Assembly (NCBI GenBank): GCA_038496445.1
Contig: JALMLS010000455.1
Span: 186,001 to 250,000 of the forward strand
Reading direction: 5' to 3'
Origin: Trichosphaerium sp. ATCC 40318
Taxonomy: Eukaryota; Protista; Tubulinea
Length of the DNA: 64,000 nucleotides
Below are positions 23,555 to 62,719 of this stretch, in pieces. Below the pieces are notes generated by a model, which was not told where the DNA came from, did no database searches, and saw nothing but the letters and a program-made list of their open reading frames with translations. The position numbers and the translations under genes were made by a program. Positions within the stretch are counted from its first letter, which is position 1. Every line of letters begins with the position of its first letter.

Positions 23555-26500
23555 ATGGAAAGTAAATCCGCGTGTGGCGATCTTTTGGTTTTTGGTAAGC
23601 GGCTTTTTTTTTGAAGTTGTTAGTTTATCAATAGTCATTATGTAGGTAAAATATTCATTCTGGATGAAGGTTGTTTTTACAAAGGGACTTTAAAAAATGG
23701 TATCAGACATGGCAAAGGCGAACAAACATGGTATGGTGATAACGATGTTAGTGGTAAGAGAGTGTTTTTTGTGATGATTACCAACAATACATAGGCTATG
23801 AAAATGGTACCAAATACATCGGTGACTTTGTGGATGGCAAAATGACAGGAAAAGGAGAGCTTTATTGGTCAGACGGTGACAAATACATCGGTGACTTTGT
23901 GGATGATAAGAGAACAGGAAAAGGAGAGATTTATTGGTCAGACGGTGACAAATACATCGGTGACTTTGTGGATGATAATATAACAGGAAAAGGAGAGCTT
24001 TATTTACCAAATGGTACCAAATACATTGGTGACTTTGTGGATGGCAAGACAGCAGGAAAAGGAGAGATCTATTGGCCAAATGGTAACAAATACATCGGTG
24101 ACTTTGTGGATGGCAAGAGAACAGGGAAAGGAGTTTTATTGGCCAAATGGTACCAAATACACTGGTGACTTTGTGGATGATAAAAAAACAGGAAAAGGGG
24201 AGTATTATATGCCAAATGGTACCAAATACATTGGTGACTTTGTAGATGACAAAAGAACAGGAAGAGGAGAATTTTATTGGGCAAATGGTAACAAATACAT
24301 CGGTGACTTTGTGGATGGCAAGATAACAGGGAAAGGAGATTATTATTTGCCAAATGATGATGGCAAAAGAACAGGAAAAGGAGAGATTTATTGGCCAAAT
24401 GGTACCAAATACATCGGTGACTTTGTGGATGGCAAAATGAGTGGAAAAGGAGAGTATTATTGGTCAGATGATACCAAATACATTGGTGACTTTGTAGATG
24501 GCGAAAGAACAGGAACAGGAGAATTTTATTGGCCAAATGGTAACAAATACATCGGTGACTTTGTGGATGGCAAGAGAACAGGGAAAGGAGAGTTTTATTG
24601 GCCAAATGGTACCAAATACATTGGTGACTTTGTGGATGGCGAGATAACAGAAAAAGGAGAGTATTATTTGCCAAATGGTGTAAAATACATTGGTGACTTT
24701 GTGGATGACAAAAAAACAGGAAACGGAGAGTATTATTGGCCAGATGGTACGAAATACATCAGTGACTTGGAGTGTGACAAAAGAACAGGAAAAAGAGAGT
24801 TTTCTTTGATAGGTACCAAATACATCGGTGACTTTGTGGATGGGAAGTTTACAGGAAAACGAAAGTATCTTATGCCAGATAGCGTGTACATTGGTGACTT
24901 AGTGGATGGCAAAAAAACAGGAAAAGGAGAGATTTATTGGCCAAATGGTGACAAATACATCGGTGACTTTGTGGATGATAAGAGAACAGGAAAAGGAGAT
25001 TTTTATTGGCCAAATTATACCAAATACACTGGTGACTTTGTGGATGGCAAGATGACAGGAAAAGGAGAGTATTATTGGCAAGATGGTACCAAATACATTG
25101 GTGACTTTGTGGATGGCAATATGACAGGAAAAGGAGAGTATTATTGGTCAGATGGTGACAAATACATCGGTGACTTTGTGGATGATAATAGAATAGGAAA
25201 AGGAGAGTTTTATTGGCAAGATGGTACCAAATACATTGGTGACTTTGTGGATGACAAAAGAACAGGAAAAGGAGAGTATTATTCGCCAGATGGTACCATA
25301 TACATTGGTGACTTTGTGGATGACAAAAAAACAGGAAAAGGAAAGTATTATATGCCAGATAATACCATATACATTGGTGACTTTGTGGATGACAAAAAAA
25401 CAGGAAAAGGAGAGTATTATTTGCCAGACGGTGCCAAATACATCGGTGACTTTGTGGATGACAAGAGAACAGGAAAAGGAGAGATTTATTGGCCAAATGG
25501 TGCCGCATACATTGGTGACTTTGTGGATGACAAGAGAACAGGAACAGGAGAGTATTATTTGCCAGATGGTACCAAATACATTGGTGACTTTGTGGATGGT
25601 AAGTTTCTTAAGCTGGCAGATACCAAGATTTCTGACGAACCCAATCAACACTCTTTTTTCAAAATGGCAAAAATTTGCACTAAAAGTACATCCATGTACA
25701 TTGAAGATGTGGATGTATATTCAGAAGATATGAAGTATTTCAAGAAGCTGAATGACTGGTTTGTAACTTCCACGTTTATTACTCCAAATGACAGTTTCCA
25801 AATATCACATCAAAGATCCTTAATTGTTGAGATCCTTTCAAGACACATGTTCGTTCAAGTTGTTAAGCGGATAAAACAACACAACAAAAAATACAATTCA
25901 TTGTGTGATGTGGTATTTGTTTATGATCTATGTTTACATGATCCTGAGATATCATTATATCAAGGTACATACCAATAACATGTCTTATGTATCAATATGT
26001 GCTCACATTAATAACTTAGTTACAACTCTAGCACGTGAGATTCCAGGGGCACGTGTGATACCAATAAAGATGAAAGACATTACAAAGGAACAATTTCAAG
26101 CTGAATATTACAGATCGTTGTCCCCTCAAAAAAAGCCATCAACTATTGCTTCCGGTATGGATCATACAGAATATGAATACATAAAGCAACTGAACGCAAA
26201 ATTGTTGGTTGTGGGTCATGGAGGATCAGGTACAATAAAACTTTGTGTTTATACATTTACATAAATTTAAGGTAAGACAACTTTAGTAAGGAAGTTGTCA
26301 GGTGAAAAAGATGATAGCGTTGATTCAACAATTGGCTTTGATACCTCGTCTCTATTGTGCGTTTGTTTGATAACAATATTAAGATGTTATACTTACCTTT
26401 GTAGATATGGCGATTTATCATTCACTGTGTTAGACTTTGCTGGACAGATGGAATACAAAGGACTTCACAAGTATTTTTTCACTAAACAATTTGGCGTTTA

Positions 26501-29500
26501 CATCATTGTTGTAAGATCCTAAGAACACATCACTAACACTTTCTTATCAATATATTATTTTAGATTGACTTATCATTATCAATTATGGAGCAAAAGAAGC
26601 ACCTTAAACACTGGGTTCATACCCTTAGTAAGTTTTTGCGTGGCCAAGACGCAAAACTCTACTCAGTGATAGTATATGGATCCAAGTTGGATGTTCATGC
26701 AGGAGACTTAGAAGCTACTAAAAAAGCGCTTTTCTCCTTCAATAAGATGTCGTCAATGTACCTTACATTTTGCTTTGATGGTACTTGATTTATGTTAAAC
26801 TAAGCAAGTCTCTAATGCCGTTTTAACAGGTGTTCCCGATCTTGTGAAGAAATTGAAGCGTCAGGCAAAATACATGAAGTCTCAATACCCAAAAGTACCA
26901 ACCTTTTATTACGAAGTACAAAAAGCCTTGAAGAAAGCAGTTGTGAACAAAGATAGATTGGAGGGTAACATCATATCATTGTACGTTGATTGTATTTACA
27001 GAAACGCTGATGAATAACATGAAATAGTGAACAAGCCATCAAACTATTGCCCAAGACTTGTAAAATGGCTCCAATTGAGTTGGTTGCCTCGTTAAATTAC
27101 CTTCACTCTATTGGTAGCATTATGTTTGATGAGGTACTTCTGCTAGCCTAAAACCGTTTTTCTATGAGCTTGAACTTGATTTAATTATCTTCTAGTCATC
27201 ATATATGTTGTGTTTAGACCCTCCGATTCTATCTCGTATTATGAGTGTCTTTGTTGCTCCTACAGAACATTTGAGTAGACTGCTGAATGATGAGTCGCGA
27301 AATCACTGTGCTGTATTCACAGATGCAGAGGCCCATTACCGCATCTCTAAGGTATTTGAACTGTGTACAAAGGATGAAAAGAAGCAAATGAAGCAAGTGA
27401 AGCAAGTGATGAGATTCTTGGTTGAACTGTCGTTTTGTGTTTGCTTGACAAAAGAAGAAAAGGTAGCACTTTGTAACATGTTTATTGGCGCATTATTTAC
27501 TTACTGTGGTTAGAAAGTTTATGGCTCAGACGGATACATCATAATTTCGTTATTGCCAAAAGCTGATATGTTATACTTTCCGCCTGTGACAGAAAAGGAG
27601 TCCAGTATCAATCTTGTTAAAAAAGGAAACAAGGAATTATCCACATTTTCTGAAGTGTTTTACTTGAGCAAGTTGCCAACAGAGTGGAGGTTGCTATCAT
27701 TCATACCTAAAAAAGATGATAGCTTTGAGACCAAGACGATTGAAACAATCAAAAAAAATCCAAATACCCAAAAAATAGTACGTTTGAAACACGTGTTCTC
27801 TTTGTCTTTTCTCAATTTTTTCTTTGTTTTCTTGTTTATTGTTAGTATTGCTAACCACCCTTTTTAGTCACTTCCTGACATATATGAGCACCTATCAACC
27901 ACTTCAAAGTTCTTAGCATACCAAGTCAGCGAAACTTCCATAGACGTATTTAATAACTTGCAAACAAGATTAAGAGGTAAGCACCAAAATAACGTTTTAG
28001 CTATACTAACAAAATATCTAGAGTTCCGAAACAAAGAGTTTCGCCTATTTTCGAATCTGATTGTATTGAATGATTTTTATGGTAACACAATTGTGCTGTA
28101 CTACAATAACATTGCCATAAATATTGTCATCAGAGGCAAGGTGCCGTGGTTATGGAAGGTACGATAGCACAAATATCATAGTTAAGTATTGAAAATATTC
28201 ACATATGTTTAGAAATGTATTGGTTCGTACTTAGCACCATTGGAAGGTAAACCAGTACAGCTATGCCCTGTTAGTATTCAAAACGGCCGTGTTGTTGAAG
28301 CTTCAAAACCTCCATATACGTTTGAACAAACAGGTAACCACGAATTGAAGGTCAACTATACTTACAACAATCTGATAGGAGATATTGTCACTGCCTCTCA
28401 CTTGAAAAACGGCTTTCCTGTACTGCCAATAAGCCACAATAGGTTGTGGAGCAGTCTTCATGGCGAACAATTTTTAAAACAAGGCGATTGGAAAGAGAAT
28501 AAGAAAAAGTATCCAGGTTTGAGATGGACTTCTCTCACAAGCCACGAAACAACCAAAGTATGTCTGACACCTTTTCCAACTTGATATTATCTTTACTGAC
28601 TGATCTAAACAGGAGCGTTGTGACGAGTACTTGAGAGCTCGCAATATGTTCTACAAGTTTATGGGTACTGAGAGTGAGTCGTTCTTTACACTGGAAAAGA
28701 TTGTATTCTTTGACAATCAAACGCTTGAAGCTGCATTCCAAAAAAAATATGAACAGCTTGTTGCTAAAGTACTTCAATCTAAATCTTCAGGTAAGTGATA
28801 GAACATTTTATAGCAATTCTTATTAATCCACCATTTAGATATTAGCGATAGCAAATTGAATACAGTCGATAAAGATAAACTTGAAGCACAAGAACGGACA
28901 ATGAACCATTTGAAAAACTATATTCTCCTTGTTTCTGGTAATGAGCAAATCAATCTCATTGGTGGGTTTCATGGCGCAACAGAGGTACTATCATCATATT
29001 AAGTATTCCACTTATACGCATACATAGGACATCAGTTTCTTAATTGCGACCCACAACTTTAGAGAGCCAGGAAAGTTAAAAGACCAGAAAGATCCAGGAT
29101 TCTTTGGTACCAACATTTAAAATACCTTTTGTTTTCATGTACATGTTTAACTTACTGTGTTTCCAAGGGAAGGGTATCTACTTTACACAATACCCAGACT
29201 ATGGTACGTGTCTATAGTCATGTGATTGAAGTTAATAGAGCTGTTGTAGGAAAGGTGTTTGCTGAGTGGCACAAGACAGATACTCCTTGTATGTTGATAT
29301 CGTGGGTGATGATGGGAAAACCCTATCCAGCTACCGAAGTTCCAAACCCTAGTGATCCAAACAGTCTCTGTGGAAAAGGATGCAAGGTAATCCATTGAAA
29401 TTACCCATTAATTAGGCTAACAATGTAAAAATAGGATGGATACGATTCACACTATGCTATTGTTAAAAAAACAACTAGTGCTCGCAATTGCCATCCTTGT

Positions 29501-30161
29501 AAAAAAACCGAAAAGCCAGACTTTGATGAGATTGTTGTATTCTCCAACAAACAAGTACTAATTTGCCATAAGTATTATTTATTTAACTTTTTTGATAAGA
29601 TTCTCCCGAGATACCTTGTTTATTATCAAAGCACAAATACTATTAATCTATCACAGTTCAACACCAAGTACAGAGATGCAAAATGTCTCATCTTATGGGT
29701 TGATGATAACGTCTCTGACGAGAACAAAAATATTGTAAAGCTATTAAAAGCTCGGCCAAGGAAAACAGAGGTACAAAGAAATATAATATGTTGAAGGTTG
29801 ATAACACTCCAAAAGGTTATAGAAATGAAATCATCCTCAGAGGTATTGGCATGGCTTCAAAAGTTTAAAGGATATTGTAACAACAGGCTACGTATTATAA
29901 CAAACAGGTACCGTAAAGGTGATGGAGATGAGAATGCAGCAGAGCACTTGGTGAAAAGTATAATTAAGCAAAATAAGAAATGGAGTAAAATACCTATTCT
30001 TGTGTTTTGTGGTATGTGTGTCACAAAACTTGATTGCATTGATGTTAAACATTGCTCATATTTTGAATCTAGGTAACAAAGCGAGTGTCAAGTTTCTCAA
30101 AAAGAAATACAAGAATGTTTCAGTCACAGAAAATCCTGCAGACGTGTTAGCATTGAAATAA
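23555..30161 (+). CDS. Roco-family protein: MORN repeats - Roc GTPase - COR - PARP-like ADP-ribosyltransferase - receiver-like domain (one frameshift in the repeat array as assembled)
   Basis: MORN unit GKGEYYWPNGTKYIGDFVD. Roc: KLLVVGHGGSGKTT, STIG, DFAGQ, GSKLD. COR: VPTFY...LNYLHSIGSIM...LDP. ART: GFHG, GFFGKGIYFTQY, GYDSH, DEIVVF...ILPRYLV. REC-like: ILWVDDN...IITNRYR...IPILVFC. Confidence 0.85.
23800..25600 (+). repeat. Tandem 69-bp (23-aa) MORN repeat array, ~26-27 near-identical units
   Basis: Recurring aaatacat(c/t)ggtgactttgtggatg at ~69-bp spacing; one truncated unit near 24355. Confidence 0.95.
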
Positions 30162-30814
30162 GTGAGTAATCTACTAAACACAAAGATCACAGCTCATTGC
30201 AAATTCACTAGACTTTTATGCTACCACTCCCCTTCATTGAGTACTTACTATCTTGTCAGGATTCGAACCAGACAACAAATAGCCATGTAAAACTTTATAA
30301 AGCAAAGTCTTCGTTTTAGCTTTGCTTTATTTTTTTGTTTGGATTCGTGTTGAAAGTTCCCAAAAAAAAAGGAAAGAAACTCCCTCAACAAAAGAGTACT
30401 ATCGTACTTGGCTCCTTATATTGTTATTCTTGGTATACGTTATTGCATATTTAACCTGTACCAACGCAGTAGAGTGGTTCTTTACTTTCACCGACAAGTT
30501 CCGTATTGAGTTGTTTTGGTCAATTAAGGGTTGACCCGGATTATCTTTTTTGTTTCATTGTGGGCATTTATAGCACGGTTGTAACAACCAAGAAATATTT
30601 AGTTCAATTGCTGGCAATCGCCATACAAAGTCTAAGGTATGAAAATGGATTTGGCTATAAGGCTATGACCAATTTTTCGATAAGCATCCGTTATCTTTTT
30701 GAAACAAGTCCGAAAACTGCTTCTTTTCTAAAAAAACTCGAGTTGAAAGGAGTGTGAAAACGCTTGTCTTTGAAACTTGGTAGTAAGTGTGTAGTCTTAG
30801 GATATCCGTGTTTA

Positions 30815-32332
30815 TTACAAGTTGCATTTAAATACAGGTTTTCTTTTTTGAAAGAAAGCCATACTTGCTTCAGTAAGATCATCTGACATGAGATGAGTAG
30901 TGTTCCACATAGCAATATGATTTAATCCGTCTTCTGTAGTATGTTCTTGTGCGTAGTTCATTACAATTTTTGTTCCTTGAACAGCCAGTGGAGAATGAGA
31001 TGCTATGACAGTGCAAATCTGCGAAAAAAAATTAGTGTTATTGGCTGAAGTTTAATGAAATTGAGAGACTATTCAACTCTCGTGATTGAAAAATATCACA
31101 AGGTAGTCAAAAAAACAAGGTCATACAACTCTTGCAATCTCCTCCGGGAATCGAACCCGGGTTGGCAACGTGACAGGCTACCGTGCTAAACCACTACACT
31201 AAGGAGGATGTGTGTATAATTAGCTAGAGCTCTACCATCGTCCGCTCGTGAAACGGCATGGATGTTACAAAGAGTGTAATGCATGCGAAGTCTTTTCTTT
31301 TGAATAAAAAACCGAAAAAAAAAGGCATCTATCTTACCTTTAATGCTCCTTTAAGCATATCTTCCTTGTTCTCATATACTTGATTAACAAATCCGCTACT
31401 TAATGCTCTACCAGATTTGAGTGGTGCTGCAGTAAACGCCATCTCGCGTGCGAGACCCTTTTAAGAAAATTGAGTTAGAGATTTTCAGTTCTTACTATTC
31501 TTATCATCAAGAAACACGTGTTTACCTTTGGTACGACTTTTTGTATGCGTTGAAGTGTACCCAAATCAGCAACCATTGCAATAGCTGTCTCCTTTATAGA
31601 GAAGTATGCATCCCTGTTTTAAAACGTTATGTTAGAATTCACTCTTTGACAACTTACAAAAAACTAAGAAACTGGTTGAACTTACTTTGTACAGACTCTA
31701 AAATCTGCTGCGCAAATGACATCAACAGCACCACCAATACATGCGCCATGAATAGCAGCAATTACTTAGAGATCACAGTTAGTAACAGGCTTAAAGACGG
31801 TACTTTTGGATGGCAATACCTGGTTTTTTACACTTTTCAATGGATGATACTGCAGCTTGCCAGTTCAATATGTGAGTGTAAAGCTGATGTTTTCTAATCC
31901 CAAATGCGCCCATGTCGCTTGTCGCTGCTGCCAAGTCCAATCCGGCACAAAATAACTTGCCGTTCGCGTGGAGAACGATGGCACGTACCTAGGAGTTTTT
32001 GTAAGTGTCAGCGCACAAGTATTCGTTGTTTTAAGCGTAGAGACGGGCGCTGATGGCGACGTGGAACGGGAAACTGTATTTTACCGACTTTTGGTTTATT
32101 TCGTACGTTGATATCGTCTGCCAACGTGTCAAAAGTACTCCTGATCTCCATAAAGAGCTATTCCGAGTTAGTTTAAATTATCACGTTTAAACAAGCGTAT
32201 TTTACCTTGTGGTCCATCAAGTTAAGCTTTTTAGGCCTGTCAAGAATCTACAAGTCGTTATGAATGTACTTGCGTTTAAAACGTTACCACTTCAGCGATA
32301 TTGTTAGAAATTTTTACGGTTAACCTCTCCAT
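30815..32332 (-). CDS. ECH1: Delta(3,5)-delta(2,4)-dienoyl-CoA isomerase-like crotonase
   Basis: LDRPKKLNLM, VRAIVLHANGKLFCAGLDL, SIEKCKKP, AIHGACIGGAVDVICAAD, SPLAVQGTKIVMNYAQEH, IAMWN. Confidence 0.8.
31137..31208 (-). tRNA. tRNA-Asp(GTC), intronic in ECH1, with an imperfect acceptor end (possible pseudogene)
   Basis: TCCTCCT TA GTGT AGTGGTTTA GCAC G GTAGC CT-GTC-AC GTTGC CAAC CCGGG TTCGATT CCCGG AGGAGAT; T7 run ~20 nt downstream. Confidence 0.8.
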
Positions 32333-49772: not shown

Positions 49773-50600
49773 CTAAGCTGTATTCCTCCTACTGTTACGA
49801 TTTGTCTTAAATACTTGTCTATAATGCCATTTCGGTGGTTGTAAAGGAGACACACCATGTGTATAAGTAATGGCATACTCCAACTGCCCATCAAAATGCC
49901 ATTTTCTATACTCTCCATGAAGTTTGTTATCCAAAAAATTAGAAACAACGCAAGGATTCCCTGTCTTATACCACTGCTTAGATTCACCTTGTAATAAACC
50001 GTCCTTATAGAATTGCTTCGATTGTAAATTACCATTGGGATACCACTTCTTAGCTGTACCATCAAGTTTACCAGACTTACAAAAAGACAAACTTATCAAT
50101 TTACTAGTAGGTGTAAATCTTTCCCAAACTCCTTCTTTCTTCCCTCCTTCATAGAAACAGCGTGAAGAGCATCTTCCATTAAGATGATAAGTAAAATAAG
50201 CGCCTTGTCTTGAACCATTAATATATTCACCACGTGATAAAATCTGGCCATGAGGAGAATGGAAAGTCTCAAACGGTCCGTTTTTTTCACCGTTTTTTAG
50301 AGTGTATCGATGGAGTATTGCGCCATCATCACTCCATCGCTTACGTATTCCGTTCTCTAACCCTGATACGTATTGACGTTGTTCCACTAATGTATCGCCA
50401 CACCAACGCTTCCAAGTGCCGTTTTTTTCAAGTGAGTCGTTGAATCTAGAAGACGAAGCCATCGCCCGACAAATTAATGGCCAAATCGAAAAAACTTGTC
50501 TGTCTTGATCACATATTTCGAAGTGTAATTCCAGCGGTAACTCCAAGAGTGGACTACTAAACAGGAAATAAGGAAAGGTAAAGTTTTTGTAAAGTGACAT
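49773..50600 (-). CDS. Intronless F-box-like plus MORN-variant (YwqK-like) repeat protein
   Basis: LLELPLELHFEIC...ICR N-terminus; repeats such as GKLDGTAKKWYPNGNLQSKQFYKDGLLQGESKQWYKTG. Confidence 0.75.
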   Translation of the reverse strand: MSLYKNFTFPYFLFSSPLLELPLELHFEICDQDRQVFSIWPLICRAMASSSRFNDSLEKNGTWKRWCGDTLVEQRQYVSGLENGIRKRWSDDGAILHRYTLKNGEKNGPFETFHSPHGQILSRGEYINGSRQGAYFTYHLNGRCSSRCFYEGGKKEGVWERFTPTSKLISLSFCKSGKLDGTAKKWYPNGNLQSKQFYKDGLLQGESKQWYKTGNPCVVSNFLDNKLHGEYRKWHFDGQLEYAITYTHGVSPLQPPKWHYRQVFKTNRNSRRNTA

Positions 50601-56300: not shown

Positions 56301-58637
56301 GAGGATGTGGGAGTGGAATACTAAGTGATTTGTTGTAGGCAACAGCAACAAAAGGTAGAAAAAACAAAAAAGAGAAAAAAGTTGATGAGTGGAGAAGTCT
56401 CCCAGTAAAAGAGCGCTTAGCGCACTCCCTTGTTGAGGGTATTCATAAATACATTGAAGCTGATACAGAAGAAGCAAGACTTCTAGTATGTAACCGGTGT
56501 TTTTTTTCGTTGTTTTCTAATGGTTGTTTTTTCTTAAGCTTAAAGTACCACTCAAAGTCATTGAAGGTCCATTGATGGATGGTATGACTATTGTCGGTGA
56601 TTTATTCGGATCTGGAAAGATGTTTTTGCCTCAAGTCATTAAGAGCGCTCGTGTCATGAAAAAGGCTGTAGCACATTTGATTCCATTCTTGGAGGAAGAA
56701 AAAGCTAAAAACGGTACAAGTGGTACAGATGATGACTCTCAGTACGCTGGAAAGGTATGTAGCAGTAAATGAGGTTTAAAATTACGTCTAACAAGCGCTA
56801 CAGATCTTGCTGGCTACTGTCAAAGGTGATGTACACGACATTGGTAAAAATATCGTGGGCGTCGTTTTGGGTTGTAACAACTACAAAGTTATCGACCTTG
56901 GTGTCATGACACCTTGTCATGAAATCCTTGAAGCAGCTCAAAGAGAGAATGTTGATATTATTGGTCTTTCTGGCTTAATCACACCTTCTCTTGATGAAAT
57001 GTGTTTTGTAGCTAAAGAGATGGAACGTATGGGTATGAAGATGCCACTATTGATTGGTGGAGCTACTACTTCCAGAATCCACACAGCAGTTAAGATCTCA
57101 CCTAATATAACTACTCCTTGTGTTCATGTTGTCGATGCATCAAGAGCTGTTGTTGTAGCAGGAAACTTGTTGGATCAAGATGAAGAAACCCGTGAAGAGT
57201 ATATTGAAGATGTTAGTATGACTTACGAGGAGTTACGCGAAGAACATTACGCTAGCTTGAAAGATAGAAAGTACCTCACTTTGGCTAAAGCCCGAAGTAA
57301 GTGTTTGAAGCTTAAATGGAGCCAAGAAATGCTTCCTACAAAGCCTAATATGCTTGGTGTACAAGTATTTGACGTACGCGTAGATAGAAGAGAAGAAAAA
57401 GTTTGAATTTAGTGACTTATTGACTGACTTTTTTTTAGGACTTTTCTTTCGAAGAATTGTTACCTGCTATTGACTGGAACCCTTTCTTCCAAGTTTGGGC
57501 TTTACGTGGTAAATACCCTAACAGAAACTACCCAAAGATCTTTAATGATCCTGGTGTTGGTGCTGAAGCTAAGAAAGTATTCGATGAAGCTCAAGTATTA
57601 CTCAAACGTATTATTTCTGAAAAGAGGTTGACTGCTAAGGGTATTGTTGGTATTTTCCCTGCTAACTCTGATGGTGATGATATCATTGTCTGGAAGGATG
57701 AAAAACGACAGTACGCAACATAAACAAGCACTCTACAAAAACCTGTTTTTCCTCATTTTTCTTTTTTGTAGAGAACCACGCGCACGTCTGTTTGGTCTAA
57801 GACAACAATCACAAAAGGAAACTGATCACCCTTACCTTTCTTTTGGCGATTTCATTGCACCTGTAGAGACAGAACTTAAAGATTACATTGGCATGTTCGC
57901 TGTATCTTCTGGATTCGGTTGTGAGGAATTTGTAAAAGAATTCCAAGATGATAACGATGACTACAACGCAATTATGGCAAAGGCCTTGGGTACGTAGAAG
58001 AAAATGGAAAACACGCTACGCGTGAATGTTTTGTTTAAAAAAATCATTACTTACTCCTTTACTAGCTGATCGTCTTGCTGAAGCATTTGCTGAAGTATTG
58101 CACGCTAAAGTAAGGCGTGAAATTTGGGGATACGCAAGGAACGAAGCTTTATCTGTAGAAGACTTCCTGAAGGTTAAATACCAAGGTATTAGACCTGCTC
58201 CTGGTTACCCTTCACAACCTGATCATACTGAAAAATTGACTATGTGGGACTTGATGAATGTTGAAGAAAAGACTGGCATCGTGTACGTTTTCACGTTTAT
58301 TTTTTGATTACAGCGGCTGTTGTTGCTTTATGAGTCTTTTTGTTAACCTAGATGCTAACTTTATTTGTAGTCTTACTGATCACTTGGCAATGAACCCAGC
58401 TGCTTCAGTATGTGGTCTATATTTTGCTAATGCAAAGAGCCACTACTTTGCTGTCGGTAAAGTACAAAAAGACCAAGTGCGTAAAACTATTCTAATTTCT
58501 AGTTTTTTTTCTCTATTACCCGTACTTGCTTTGTACTTATACTTTTTTTCCAGGTTGAGGATTATTCACGCAGAAAGGGCATGGATGTTGCAGAATGTGA
58601 AAAATGGCTTTCTTCTCAGCTCGCCTATGAGCCATAG
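53308..58637 (+). CDS. MTR: Cobalamin-dependent methionine synthase
   Basis: [27 protein letters not shown]12 motif [13 protein letters not shown]...SGLITPS...[26 protein letters not shown]. Confidence 0.97.
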
Positions 58638-58914: not shown

Positions 58915-61465
58915 ATGTCATCGGATACAGAGGTATTAAAAGAACGTAGCGCTTGTACTGACTGTAATAGCTTCCAGAATACAAATGTAGCCGTCCTGCT
59001 ATGTTATTACCCATCTTACAAAATAACACCGACACAAGTACGTTACAATTAACCACAAGGAACTTAGTACGTGTTAAATCTCTTCAGATGTAGTGCATAA
59101 GCGCTCAGGGTCGCACGGTGAGCTTACTTTAGTAACCTTTACCCTTCGAACGTTGTTTTGGCGTCCTCATGACGACTCATGGATAAAAGCAAACTACAGG
59201 CGTTTTGGTCGCGGAGGGAAAATCCCTTTTGACAAGATAGAGTACGTAAAATACTTTACCACGTGATATTGCTATTGGCAATGTTTCACCGAAAGTAATT
59301 TTGATTAGTTTTGACGACAACGAATCGAGTATGGGCTACAAACGAGTTAAGAAAGTGTTGTATACTCCAACACCAGTCACAGATATGAACGAAGTAGTTA
59401 AGCATCTTGAGGTCCTACAACACGCTTCAGAGGTTGATAAAATGGTACTCATTGGTTCAAGAGCTGTCAATCATCACATGGAAGATATTGCTGTAATAGC
59501 ACCAGATGTACGCAACCTCACAACTGTATGACCTTGGATTTGTTTTCTAAGTTATTCATTAGACTGATTGGGATATCATCTCTTCACCACGTGCACTGTT
59601 GTCTTTTTTAAAGGAGCACAAAGACCTCATTAAAAAACTTGAACTCTTTACTGAGAAAGGGACTTTTCTTCATTGTGTAATAACTCATCCACTCTACCCT
59701 GAGGATGAGTTAAAGTGTGACTTTGAGGTAACTGAAAGAAAAAATGACTCAGCAAATATGATACTGGAACTATCAAAGAGTGAAGTGTCCGGACAAATAA
59801 CTTTCCCTTCAAGTCGTATTCTCACTGTAGCACCTTGGGCAGTGCTTCTCTCTATATGCCGTTCACACCTTAAATTCTCCATTAAATGGCAAAAGCACGT
59901 GCGAAGGTATCATTGCATGAAGAATGCAAGAAAAGAGGATAATGATGATGCAGACAAAAATAAGCTCATGCGGATGTTTGAAACGCGCCTTAGAGAATCA
60001 CTGAGTATTCATCATGACAACATAAAATTGAGTGACTTAAACATGTACGGAAAGAAATTGAAACAATCAGAAATGAGAAGAAACAACTAATGGATTTTTT
60101 TCTTGTTTTTTCTATTTATAGTGCTTTAACATACTGTCTTAGGATCCCTTTGAGTATTCTTGTTTGTGAAGAAGATATAAACGACTTTAAAGTATTGGTA
60201 GATGTTCCAGAAGAAGATAACTTTCTTAAGAAGAACTGGCTTTGTATGCTAGTTACTACACAACAAAGATTCAAAGCTGCAAGTTTCCTGATTAAATATA
60301 TACAAACGTCACATCCAGTGCTTAAAGACTGCAGTAAGGAAAAAGCTATAGAATGGCTAGTAACGTATGTATCTAAACACGTAAAAGTAAAGTGCTTAAT
60401 AATTGTTAAGGTGTGGACCTGCTGAGTGGATAAGCGACTTTTTAATTGATTCTTTCATGGATATTATAAACGAGAAAACATACAAGGAAGAAAAACAAGT
60501 CACCCCTATTTCTTTAGAGAATGTTGATGTAGAGCTATTCTCAAACCTTCCAACAGAGTTAAATATTGCTATACTATCGTGGATACCTGTTAATATCCAT
60601 GACACTACTGTAAAGTACGTCTGCAAAGCATGGATGGCGCTTTCCTCAGAAGATAAAGTTTGGCAGTTGATAGCAAGAACAAAGTCTTCAAATACTACTC
60701 TGGTAGTATCAAGTGGTTGTTGGAAGCTTCTTTGCAGATACAAAGAAGTAATACCTGTTGATAAACAAAGCCAAAAGAGCTTTGATCATACAGTATCCAT
60801 ACAAACCTTTGACTTGATAAAAATGTTCAACACTGCCAAATCATGGATGACAGTTGCTTTTCGTTTTGCTGACTTGAAACCTTTGCCGTTCGAATCATTG
60901 AAACGGTTTCATGTTGTCATCAAGTCATTGTTCATAGATAATGATGGTAGTTACATGTTTTATTTACCTGAAAGAAACCAAGGTGATCCTTTGAAGATGA
61001 CGATAAGTATGAGAAGTGGTGAGTATGGTTCAAGGTATAGCTATCATAGAAAATTGGTTACAGTTTCGACAGATTTTGGGTTTTCAACTAGTTTTGATGG
61101 CGCTGGTATTTGTAGCAGGGAATATAGCTATTCTACTTTGCTTTCAACTGAAATTGGTACAAAGATATGGTCAAAGGTACAACACAATGATTTCAAGAAA
61201 ACCATCTTGTTCCGCTCTTTTTCATTGATTCTATTTTTTTTTTGAACCTATGCGAAGTACCTACTCATTAGCTTTTATGTGTATCATGTATTGGTTTTTT
61301 TTTCGTTTTCTTGTTCTCTCTTTCTTGTTTACTGTGTTGTTAACTTTTTTGACATAGGAGGTTATTCCAATTTTACAGATTCCAAACTGTCTGTTGATAT
61401 CATTAGTTATAAGTACAATGGAAGATAGTGCATCATTTCTTACACATGTAAAAAGCATGCTTTAA
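58915..61465 (+). CDS. Nucleotidyltransferase-like domain plus F-box protein
   Basis: VLIGSRA...PD|TDWDII, then ICRSHLKFSIKWQKHVRRY; F-box FSNLPTELNIAILSWIP...VCKAW (~60540-60635). Spliced. Confidence 0.6.
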
Positions 61466-61584: not shown

Positions 61585-62719
61585 CTACATGTGCGCCTTT
61601 GTTACTCTGATACATTCATCTGTCACTTTAACCATGTTGCTAAGTTTTATTTTACGAACACCTTTAAGAGCAGCAATACCTTCATCTGTCACGTTTTTAA
61701 GATGTGCAAGTATGATAGTATGTACACCACAAAGAGCAGCAATGCCTACATCTGTAACTTTACTCAATGCCTCAAGATGTATTGTGTGAACACCTGCCAA
61801 AGCACTTATCCCATCATCTGTTATACGGTTACGCAAAGCCATTGAAAACAAATAAATCATTTGAACACCAGCAAGTGATTTAAGCCCTTCATCTGTCACT
61901 GAAGTTTCTCCAAGGCAAATTGTATGAACACCTGATAGGTGTTTAACACCTTTATCTGTAACTTGACGACAAGCATGAAGACTTATTGTGTGAATACCTG
62001 AAAATGACTCAAGATCTTCATCTCGAATATTTGTGTAACATAACTCAATTGAATGTACACCAGAGAGTACTCTAAAGCATACAGGATCAAGATAAGTGCA
62101 ATGTTGTAATGACACTTCATGAACACCTGCAAGTGCTTTAAGACCCTCACCTGTTATTCCCTTACATAAGGTAAGGCTTATTTTATGTACTCCAACAAGT
62201 GCTTGTAGTGTAGAATCATCAATAACAAGGAAGCTAAGATCTATTGTATGTAATCCATCCAAGTGTGCTAGATATTCACCACCAAGAGTTGTACTATCCA
62301 AGATATGAGGAAGGTAAGAAAGGTCAATATTTTTAACACCAGATAGTTTGATGAGATGCTCCTCTTCTTCTAATTTATACACTATCTTTGTATGTCTTAG
62401 AACACCCTTGTATTGTGATATCTTTTCAGCGTGGGACGGCTTTGTTATGGCGGCTTTGATGTAACCGATATTGTGATGAATAATGTCTGATAATAGATGA
62501 TTTATTGGTGATAACTTGTATCTAATGTCATCTCGAGAGGTTTGAGCAATAAGCGTTAATAGTTCGATCGGAAGGTCCAATATATTGTTACATATAGCGC
62601 TTCTATTAGTAGAAGGACTCTGTATACGTTTTGGTACGTTATATTGTCGCTTTTTGCTACTACAAGTAAATTGCGTTTAGTTTAGTTGTAGCTATCGCCA
62701 AGACGCACCAGTGTTCCAT
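61585..62719 (-). CDS. F-box/LRR protein (AMN1-like Cys-containing LRR)
   Basis: ILDLPIELLTLIA F-box; LRRs such as GVHTICLGETSVTDEGLKSL. A short first exon (MEHC) is inferred. Confidence 0.8.

Follow-up and report, generated by a model that had tools for sequence, protein, structure and literature searches.

Which enzymatic outputs can be coupled to the Roc-COR module of Roco proteins? To our knowledge, the characterised eukaryotic Rocos carry either a kinase output or no enzymatic output. Here, we analysed a window of 64,000 nucleotides (nt) from Trichosphaerium sp. ATCC 40318 (contig JALMLS010000455.1, here C3, positions 186001-250000; assembly of 70.3 Mb in 642 contigs) and focused on a gene at 23555-30161 of its plus strand, for which a first-pass annotation had proposed the architecture MORN repeats, Roc GTPase, COR region, PARP-type ADP-ribosyltransferase (ART) and pseudo-receiver. 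Support for this domain order comes from matches to protein families, transcripts and known folds and from its conservation in paralogues and in other organisms. We lean towards the reading that the gene is one of a Roco family of about 50 copies in this marine amoeba, in which the kinase output is replaced by a PARP-type ART and an acceptor-less receiver and which would work in a GTP-switched manner. A search of the full-text literature yielded no description of a Roco and a PARP/ART domain in one protein, and none is given in PMC4245714 or PMC9334734.

Gene structure and transcript support

The gene comprises 22 exons separated by 21 GT-AG introns of 41-90 nt, 20 of which start with GTA, and contains about 5.5 kb of coding sequence between an ATG at 23555 and a stop codon at 30159-30161. 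Junctions were set by hand and with a frame-checking script from stop-to-stop frames; exon 3 was treated by the script as two pieces owing to an internal frame change. Exons 1 and 2 (23555-23594 and 23646-23753) hold the start codon and a weak first MORN-like unit (20.8 bits on 23624-23791, under the cut-off of 22.5). The first two introns (23595-23645 and 23754-23794) are hand-derived and of the GT-AG type, and the 5' end is a prediction.

The RNA runs of the same species contain just a few percent of the words of the gene and yield sparse contig coverage. RNA contigs assembled from them omit two introns in Roc (26230-26271 and 26357-26404) and one in the ART (29204-29249), all of which are GT..AG introns that fit the model. 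The first of these, 42 nt long, cuts the P-loop between GHGGSG and KT. A further RNA contig is unbroken across 25519-25669 and reaches into the non-repeat linker that follows the MORN array.

The 3' part of the gene can be compared with P0001, a 302-aa protein from the MMETSP0405 transcriptome of Trichosphaerium sp. ATCC 40318. Exons 15-22 cover P0001 end to end and junction for junction (residues 1-28, 29-54, 57-66, 68-112, 113-152, 153-209, 210-274 and 276-302) with 81-100% identity per exon, while P0001 and a paralogue at C3:957.5 kb are identical in the exons compared. Given that P0001 passes the PARP threshold of Pfam and is tiled by the exons, and that at least 30 paralogues have the same arrangement, the gene structure lies far beyond chance. 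The extent and the spliced exons given in the first-pass annotation are thus borne out by an ATG and a stop codon at its limits, 21 phase-consistent introns, three of them RNA-confirmed, and the tiling of P0001.

Domain architecture

The N-terminal part is formed by an array of about 26 MORN units of 69 nt (23795-25599), the longest seen among the copies of the gene. The two frames of the array, scored separately against Pfam PF02493, gave E values of 2.1e-29 (23758-24165) and 7.6e-94 (23984-25975) with 5 and 19 matched stretches, respectively. At the DNA level, Tandem Repeats Finder returned a period of 69 nt with 8.1 and 18.1 copies and 82-84% matches, so that the proposed N-terminal MORN repeats are found both as tandem family matches and as a DNA period. 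The open frame runs on from the array into a non-repeat linker in the same exon (25600-25964), for which no Pfam family was found.

The Roc GTPase follows in five exons (26020-26980). All motifs on which its earlier assignment rested were located, namely GHGGS-GKT (26214-26229 and 26272-26279), DFAGQ (26433-26447) and SKLD (26681-26692), together with the switch I motif STIGF (26325-26339). With 27.1 bits on one exon-level piece (26271-26519), the Pfam Roc family PF08477 is just over its cut-off of 27, while relatives reach 48-61 bits. The Roc of the window is collinear with that of three relatives, P0008, P0022 and P0069. P0008 is a single open reading frame (ORF) of 1131 aa on an mRNA-like contig of 3.9 kb and is collinear with the window over Roc, COR, the pre-ART region, ART and receiver.

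The COR region was assigned to four exons (27028-28158), with COR-A at about 27028-27462 and COR-B at about 27514-28158. The stretch 27196-27498 aligns with residues 401-503 of P0008 (31% identity, E 2.5e-10). A structure model of P0008 residues 135-735 has a predicted local distance difference test (pLDDT) score of 70, with about 75-95 in most of Roc and COR-A and 57-70 in part of Roc. When this model was searched with Foldseek, the first 21 matches were LRRK2, LRRK1, M. barkeri Roco2 and C. tepidum Roco, with E values between 3e-15 and 1e-9 and alignments of 384-627 columns, while plain small GTPases ranked lower and matched over about 200 columns only. A protein-language-model search with P0008 residues 330-720 led to COR-A/COR-B clusters at 0.89. 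In Pfam, two relatives gave COR signals, P0038 for COR-A with 32.5 bits (cut-off 35.3) and P0022 for COR-B with E 0.009. COR and ART are joined by a linker exon (28213-28557), placed by an alignment (A2) and by tblastn with P0069 and assigned to no protein family. In the corresponding linkers of P0008, P0036 and P0069, a CxxC...C..GH motif is shared that may represent a small zinc-binding insert; its Cys/His positions are partly lost in the window copy.

The PARP-type ART extends over seven exons (28613-29629), identified by the tiling of P0001, Pfam, fold and motifs. The motifs FHG (28967-28975), GIYF (29173-29184) and DEIVVF (29525-29542) contain the predicted catalytic residues His (28970-28972), Tyr (29179-29181) and Glu (29528-29530), and all three members of the H-Y-E triad thus lie where the first-pass annotation had placed them. 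Pfam gave no match on single ART exons of the window. As these are too short for such a scan, relatives were sought in a library of 1.84 billion proteins with the stop-free read-through of the ART of a paralogue, which returned 56 relatives. The read-through itself reached only E 0.057 for Pfam PARP and had no phmmer match among solved structures. The PARP family PF00644 (cut-off 26.7) was passed by P0016 (48.7 bits), P0008 (47.9), P0004 (38.9) and P0001 (38; E 1.6e-9). By sequence, P0016 matched the solved structures of PARP4 (E 5.6e-6), ZAP/PARP13, PARP12 and PARP2, with the HG, GxGIYF, YDS and DEIVV motifs aligned.

For P0001, an AlphaFold (AF2) model based on an alignment of 40 sequences reached a pLDDT of 88. 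For its first 165 residues, the top 50 Foldseek matches are all catalytic domains of PARP1-4 with a probability of 1.00, and VIA-align gave Z scores of 11.1-11.4 to tankyrase 2, PARP1, PARP2, PARP3 and PARP4. The ART fold, on which the proposed output depends, is hence present in the model. Within the family, the catalytic Tyr is kept in 36 of 36 and the Glu in 37 of 37 members.

The last part of the gene, including the stop codon (29630-30161), encodes a CheY-like domain with the motifs WVDD (29696-29707) and IITN (29894-29905); its exons share 86-94% identity with P0001. Residues 178-302 of the P0001 model superimpose on response-regulator receivers with Z scores of 11-12.7 and a root-mean-square deviation (rmsd) of 2.1-2.6 Å over 103-119 residues in VIA-align; the best match is 3ilh (Z 12.7, rmsd 2.6, 119 residues), and PorX, DivK, FixJ and CheY were matched as well. 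At the end of beta-3, where receivers have the phospho-acceptor Asp, the window reads IITN; of 25 family members, 17 have Asn here and none has Asp. The position of the conserved receiver Lys is taken by Asn, Asp or Glu in the family. Without this acceptor, 'pseudo-receiver' is an apt term, and its assignment in the first-pass annotation agrees with the receiver fold of the P0001 model as well.

Gene family and relatives

The first-pass annotation had also suggested looking for Roc-COR plus PARP proteins elsewhere and for an expansion of paralogues, and both were found. Roc and PARP occur in one ORF in P0008, P0022, P0069 and P0036 (Mastigamoeba balamuthi). In the 70.3-Mb assembly of the Trichosphaerium genome (70.87 Mb and 37.7% GC as published; PMC10521059), the ART exon has 73 matches, corresponding to about 50 loci, ten of which lie on the contig of the window and seven of these within 872-1004 kb. 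For the COR-A exon, 35 matches at about 33 loci were counted, and 30 of the 33 are followed by an ART exon 2.2-3.4 kb downstream on the same strand. MORN repeats lie upstream of Roc in all nine tested paralogues with a long upstream ORF, and a crude count gave 2-25 MORN cores among eleven close copies. Three divergent copies, L027 (C41:174400-181400), L028 (C25:233900-240900) and L029 (C19:17200-24200), carry an ORF of 155-177 aa upstream of Roc where the MORN array would be, and this ORF has no match in Pfam.

The closest duplicate, L033, is located on the minus strand at C3:872-882 kb. Between the linker and the 3' end, it matches the gene at 96% identity (97.2% in exons, 95.4% in introns). 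Its shorter MORN exon is open in one frame over 645 aa, and here the alignment reaches only about 85%.

Outside this genome, a contig of 14.5 kb (ENA ERZ15610571; L034) carries adjacent ORFs on the same strand, of 737 aa for ankyrin repeats, 693 aa for a faint Roc and 860 aa for PARP, next to the eukaryotic genes SRR1 and GILT. It probably represents one ANK-Roc-COR-PARP gene of another eukaryote. Word searches with P0008 led to five proteins for the ART part and to P0008 alone for the Roc-COR part. Two pattern scans of viral contigs, a weak test for a giant-virus origin or partner, revealed no relative, and a scan of bacterial and archaeal genomes gave one 36-residue match in an Oscillospiraceae metagenome-assembled genome.

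Gene integrity and alternative gene models

Several findings weigh against the reading of a GTP-switched Roco with ART output. The first concerns COR, the least direct part of the assignment, whose support in the window is indirect and comes via relatives: Pfam gave no match on single COR exons of the window, phmmer gave none between the COR parts of P0022 or P0008 and solved structures, and COR-B of the P0008 model lies at a pLDDT of 50-64.

The second is the continuity of the transcript. Among the sparse RNA contigs of this copy, none joins MORN to Roc or COR to ART; as a word search with the linker sequence of the window returned no match, MORN and Roc are not linked by a transcript. One could thus ask whether two genes are present, with the ART and receiver exons transcribed apart from MORN-Roc-COR, an arrangement to which the unbridged COR-ART junction and the start of P0001 just upstream of the ART would both conform. 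We regard such a split as very improbable: the gaps between the exons from COR to ART measure 43-90 nt with the reading phase kept, the four relatives named above have Roc and PARP in one ORF, the spacing of COR-A and ART is fixed in 30 of 33 loci, and P0001 resembles a 5'-truncated contig.

The third, a point absent from the first-pass annotation, is the integrity of the MORN array, in which the frame changes at 24133 because the unit 24078-24144 is 2 nt short (67 nt compared to 69 nt elsewhere), and the first frame closes at about 24166. Thirty GT..AG candidates for an intron in place of the frameshift were considered, and these either deviate from the GTA...[TA]AG pattern that the other 21 introns show or disrupt the repeat, the least bad being 24133-24202 (70 nt) and 24083-24119 (37 nt). 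Judged from the sequence, the shortfall could be genuine or stem from the assembly, and this copy is possibly a recent pseudogene or misassembled here.

If the 2-nt deletion were genuine, just about 190 codons would be translated from the annotated start. That the gene is such a pseudogene is a substantial possibility, which we place somewhat short of an even chance. Besides the short unit and the lack of a credible intron that restores the frame, it is favoured by the codon differences to the closest duplicate L033, 60 of which are non-synonymous and 31 synonymous, which also count against the proposed function since they indicate weak constraint that is compatible with decay. MORN arrays in two frames are moreover found in two other close copies, L044 (C3:1003300-1004824) and L045 (C274:3700-9500), where the splits may be either recurrent frameshifts or recurrent assembly indel errors. 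On the other hand, the downstream coding sequence of about 4.9 kb is entirely open and phase-consistent, the downstream exons are transcribed and spliced, and an indel in an array of 82-84% self-similarity could be an assembly error. The published assembly was built from long reads and polished with short reads (PMC10521059).

The fourth is the catalytic His, which is kept in 22 of 34 family members and replaced in 12 (Trp in seven, other residues in five; alignment A1, column of P0001 His24), so that part of the family may be inactive or altered.

Proposed mechanism and biological role

For the reading that we favour, a Roco with ART output, the following course of action can be envisaged. 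The MORN array would target the protein to a membrane or a partner protein, or bind a ligand there. By analogy with LRRK2 and bacterial Roco proteins, Roc-COR would switch its conformation or oligomeric state depending on GTP, and the state reached may free the H-Y-E ART to transfer ADP-ribose from NAD+ onto itself or onto targets. The pseudo-receiver could act as a regulatory or dimerisation module. Control by GTP, ART activity, the part played by MORN and the biological role are all inferred.

But, why should a protist maintain about fifty copies of such a gene? The expansion, the clustering, the variability of the arrays and the weak constraint resemble those of conflict families, which is no proof of an immune role. 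A conflict- or immune-type role appears somewhat more likely to us than ordinary signalling because of copy number, tandem clustering and the fast-changing MORN arrays.

In its strict form, as put forward in the first-pass annotation, the proposal is that of an NLR-like immune or self/non-self receptor, in which MORN recognises an invader or non-self, Roc-COR activates, and the ART causes death or arrest of the cell by NAD+ depletion or by ADP-ribosylation of essential or invader targets. We consider this tentative and on the unlikely side. It would account for the lineage-specific expansion to about 50 loci with a cluster on this contig, for MORN copy numbers that differ between duplicates otherwise 96% identical, for the weak constraint and for the ankyrin repeats that stand in place of MORN before Roc and PARP in L034. 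Precedents may be seen in bacterial Roc-COR conflict systems and in brown-alga ROCOs (PMC8195603; PMC3341825, PMC11378527). The expansion alone also fits signalling families in an amoeba that is multinucleate and passes through a complex life cycle, and two pattern scans of viral contigs made no arms-race partner visible. Furthermore, MORN is not an established recognition module; we know of no case in which MORN repeats act as pathogen sensors, which is a further point against an immune function.

MORN repeats are best known as tethers to membranes or proteins. An ordinary signalling Roco, in which MORN serves as membrane tether and ADP-ribosylation takes the place of phosphorylation in membrane traffic or at the cytoskeleton, would build on this property, and the exons are more conserved than the introns in the comparison with L033. 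Characterised eukaryotic Rocos function in trafficking and at the cytoskeleton (PMC3128523, PMC6337361). Fifty copies, variable arrays and frequent loss of the His would be unusual for a housekeeping function, and we hold this specific scenario to be possible, yet doubtful.

A more far-reaching idea would be an undescribed class of amoebozoan intracellular immune receptors, in which Roc-COR replaces the STAND NTPase, fast-evolving MORN or ankyrin repeats serve as sensors, possibly for giant-virus factors, and the ART is the executioner. We judge this unlikely. In Pfam and fold searches, the Roc GTPase was the only NTPase found and no NACHT or NB-ARC STAND ATPase was detected. The protein does not belong to the NLRs, as a Roc GTPase stands where these receptors have a STAND NTPase.

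Neighbouring features in the window

About 1 kb downstream of the gene, a tRNA-Asp (GTC) lies on the minus strand (31134-31209), called by ARAGORN and by Rfam with 46.4 bits. Just past the stop codon, a T-arm-like motif, GATTCGAACC, is present on the plus strand (30240-30290), where neither ARAGORN nor Rfam called a tRNA. Further away, the window contains ORFs with MORN_2 repeats (49776-50600, minus strand, E 6e-17), a B12-binding domain (56807-57403, plus strand, E 5e-18), an F-box-like domain (60403-61242, plus strand, 21.1 bits and thus below the cut-off) and the Pfam repeat LRR_6 (61588-62580, minus strand). MORN and F-box are the commonest domains among the putative giant-virus transfers in this genome (PMC10521059).

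Comparison with known systems and implications

Among described proteins, LRRK2 and LRRK1, the best matches of the P0008 Roc-COR model, and the Dictyostelium Roco kinases share with the window protein the N-terminal repeats, Roc-COR, a catalytic output and a further C-terminal domain. While they combine ANK, ARM or LRR repeats with a protein kinase and WD40, the protein analysed here has MORN repeats, a PARP-type ART and a CheY-like pseudo-receiver. The nearest PARP catalytic domains (PF00644) by sequence are those of PARP4, ZAP/PARP13 and PARP12. The ART fold, the GxGIYF and YDS motifs and an H-Y-E triad as in PARP1-5 are common to both, whereas the ART of the window comes without WGR, regulatory helical, macro or zinc-finger context and has Roc-COR and a receiver-like domain as fusion partners instead.

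Bacterial AP-GTPase (Roc)-COR proteins (Kaur et al. 2021, PMC8195603) carry variable repeats, draw on no fewer than 24 effector domains at the C-terminus and are read as conflict systems. A repeat sensor, a Roc-COR switch, a swappable effector and many paralogues per genome make them similar to the family described here; they differ in being prokaryotic and in their LRR sensors, and the effectors named in the text considered here are TIR, DRHyd, caspase, trypsin, FGS and GT4, with PARP not among them. Brown-alga ROCOs have been proposed as immune receptors with LRR/TPR modules varied by exon shuffling (PMC3341825, PMC11378527). They likewise show a lineage-specific expansion of Roc-COR and fast-changing repeat arrays, which consist of LRR/TPR compared to MORN in the window family. 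With NLR/STAND receptors, the arrangement of sensor, NTPase switch and effector and the expansion of the family are shared by analogy only, as the NTPase is a NACHT/NB-ARC ATPase in these receptors and a Ras-like GTPase in the window protein.

If true, a PARP-type output on a Roco would link LRRK2-type GTP switches and PARPs, both of them intensively studied, in one polypeptide and allow the control of a downstream enzyme by Roc-COR to be examined in a natural setting. Should the family be a defence system, it would mirror, in a eukaryote, the Roc-COR conflict proteins of bacteria, and ADP-ribosylation would join the outputs of repeat-plus-NTPase receptors in protists that host giant viruses.

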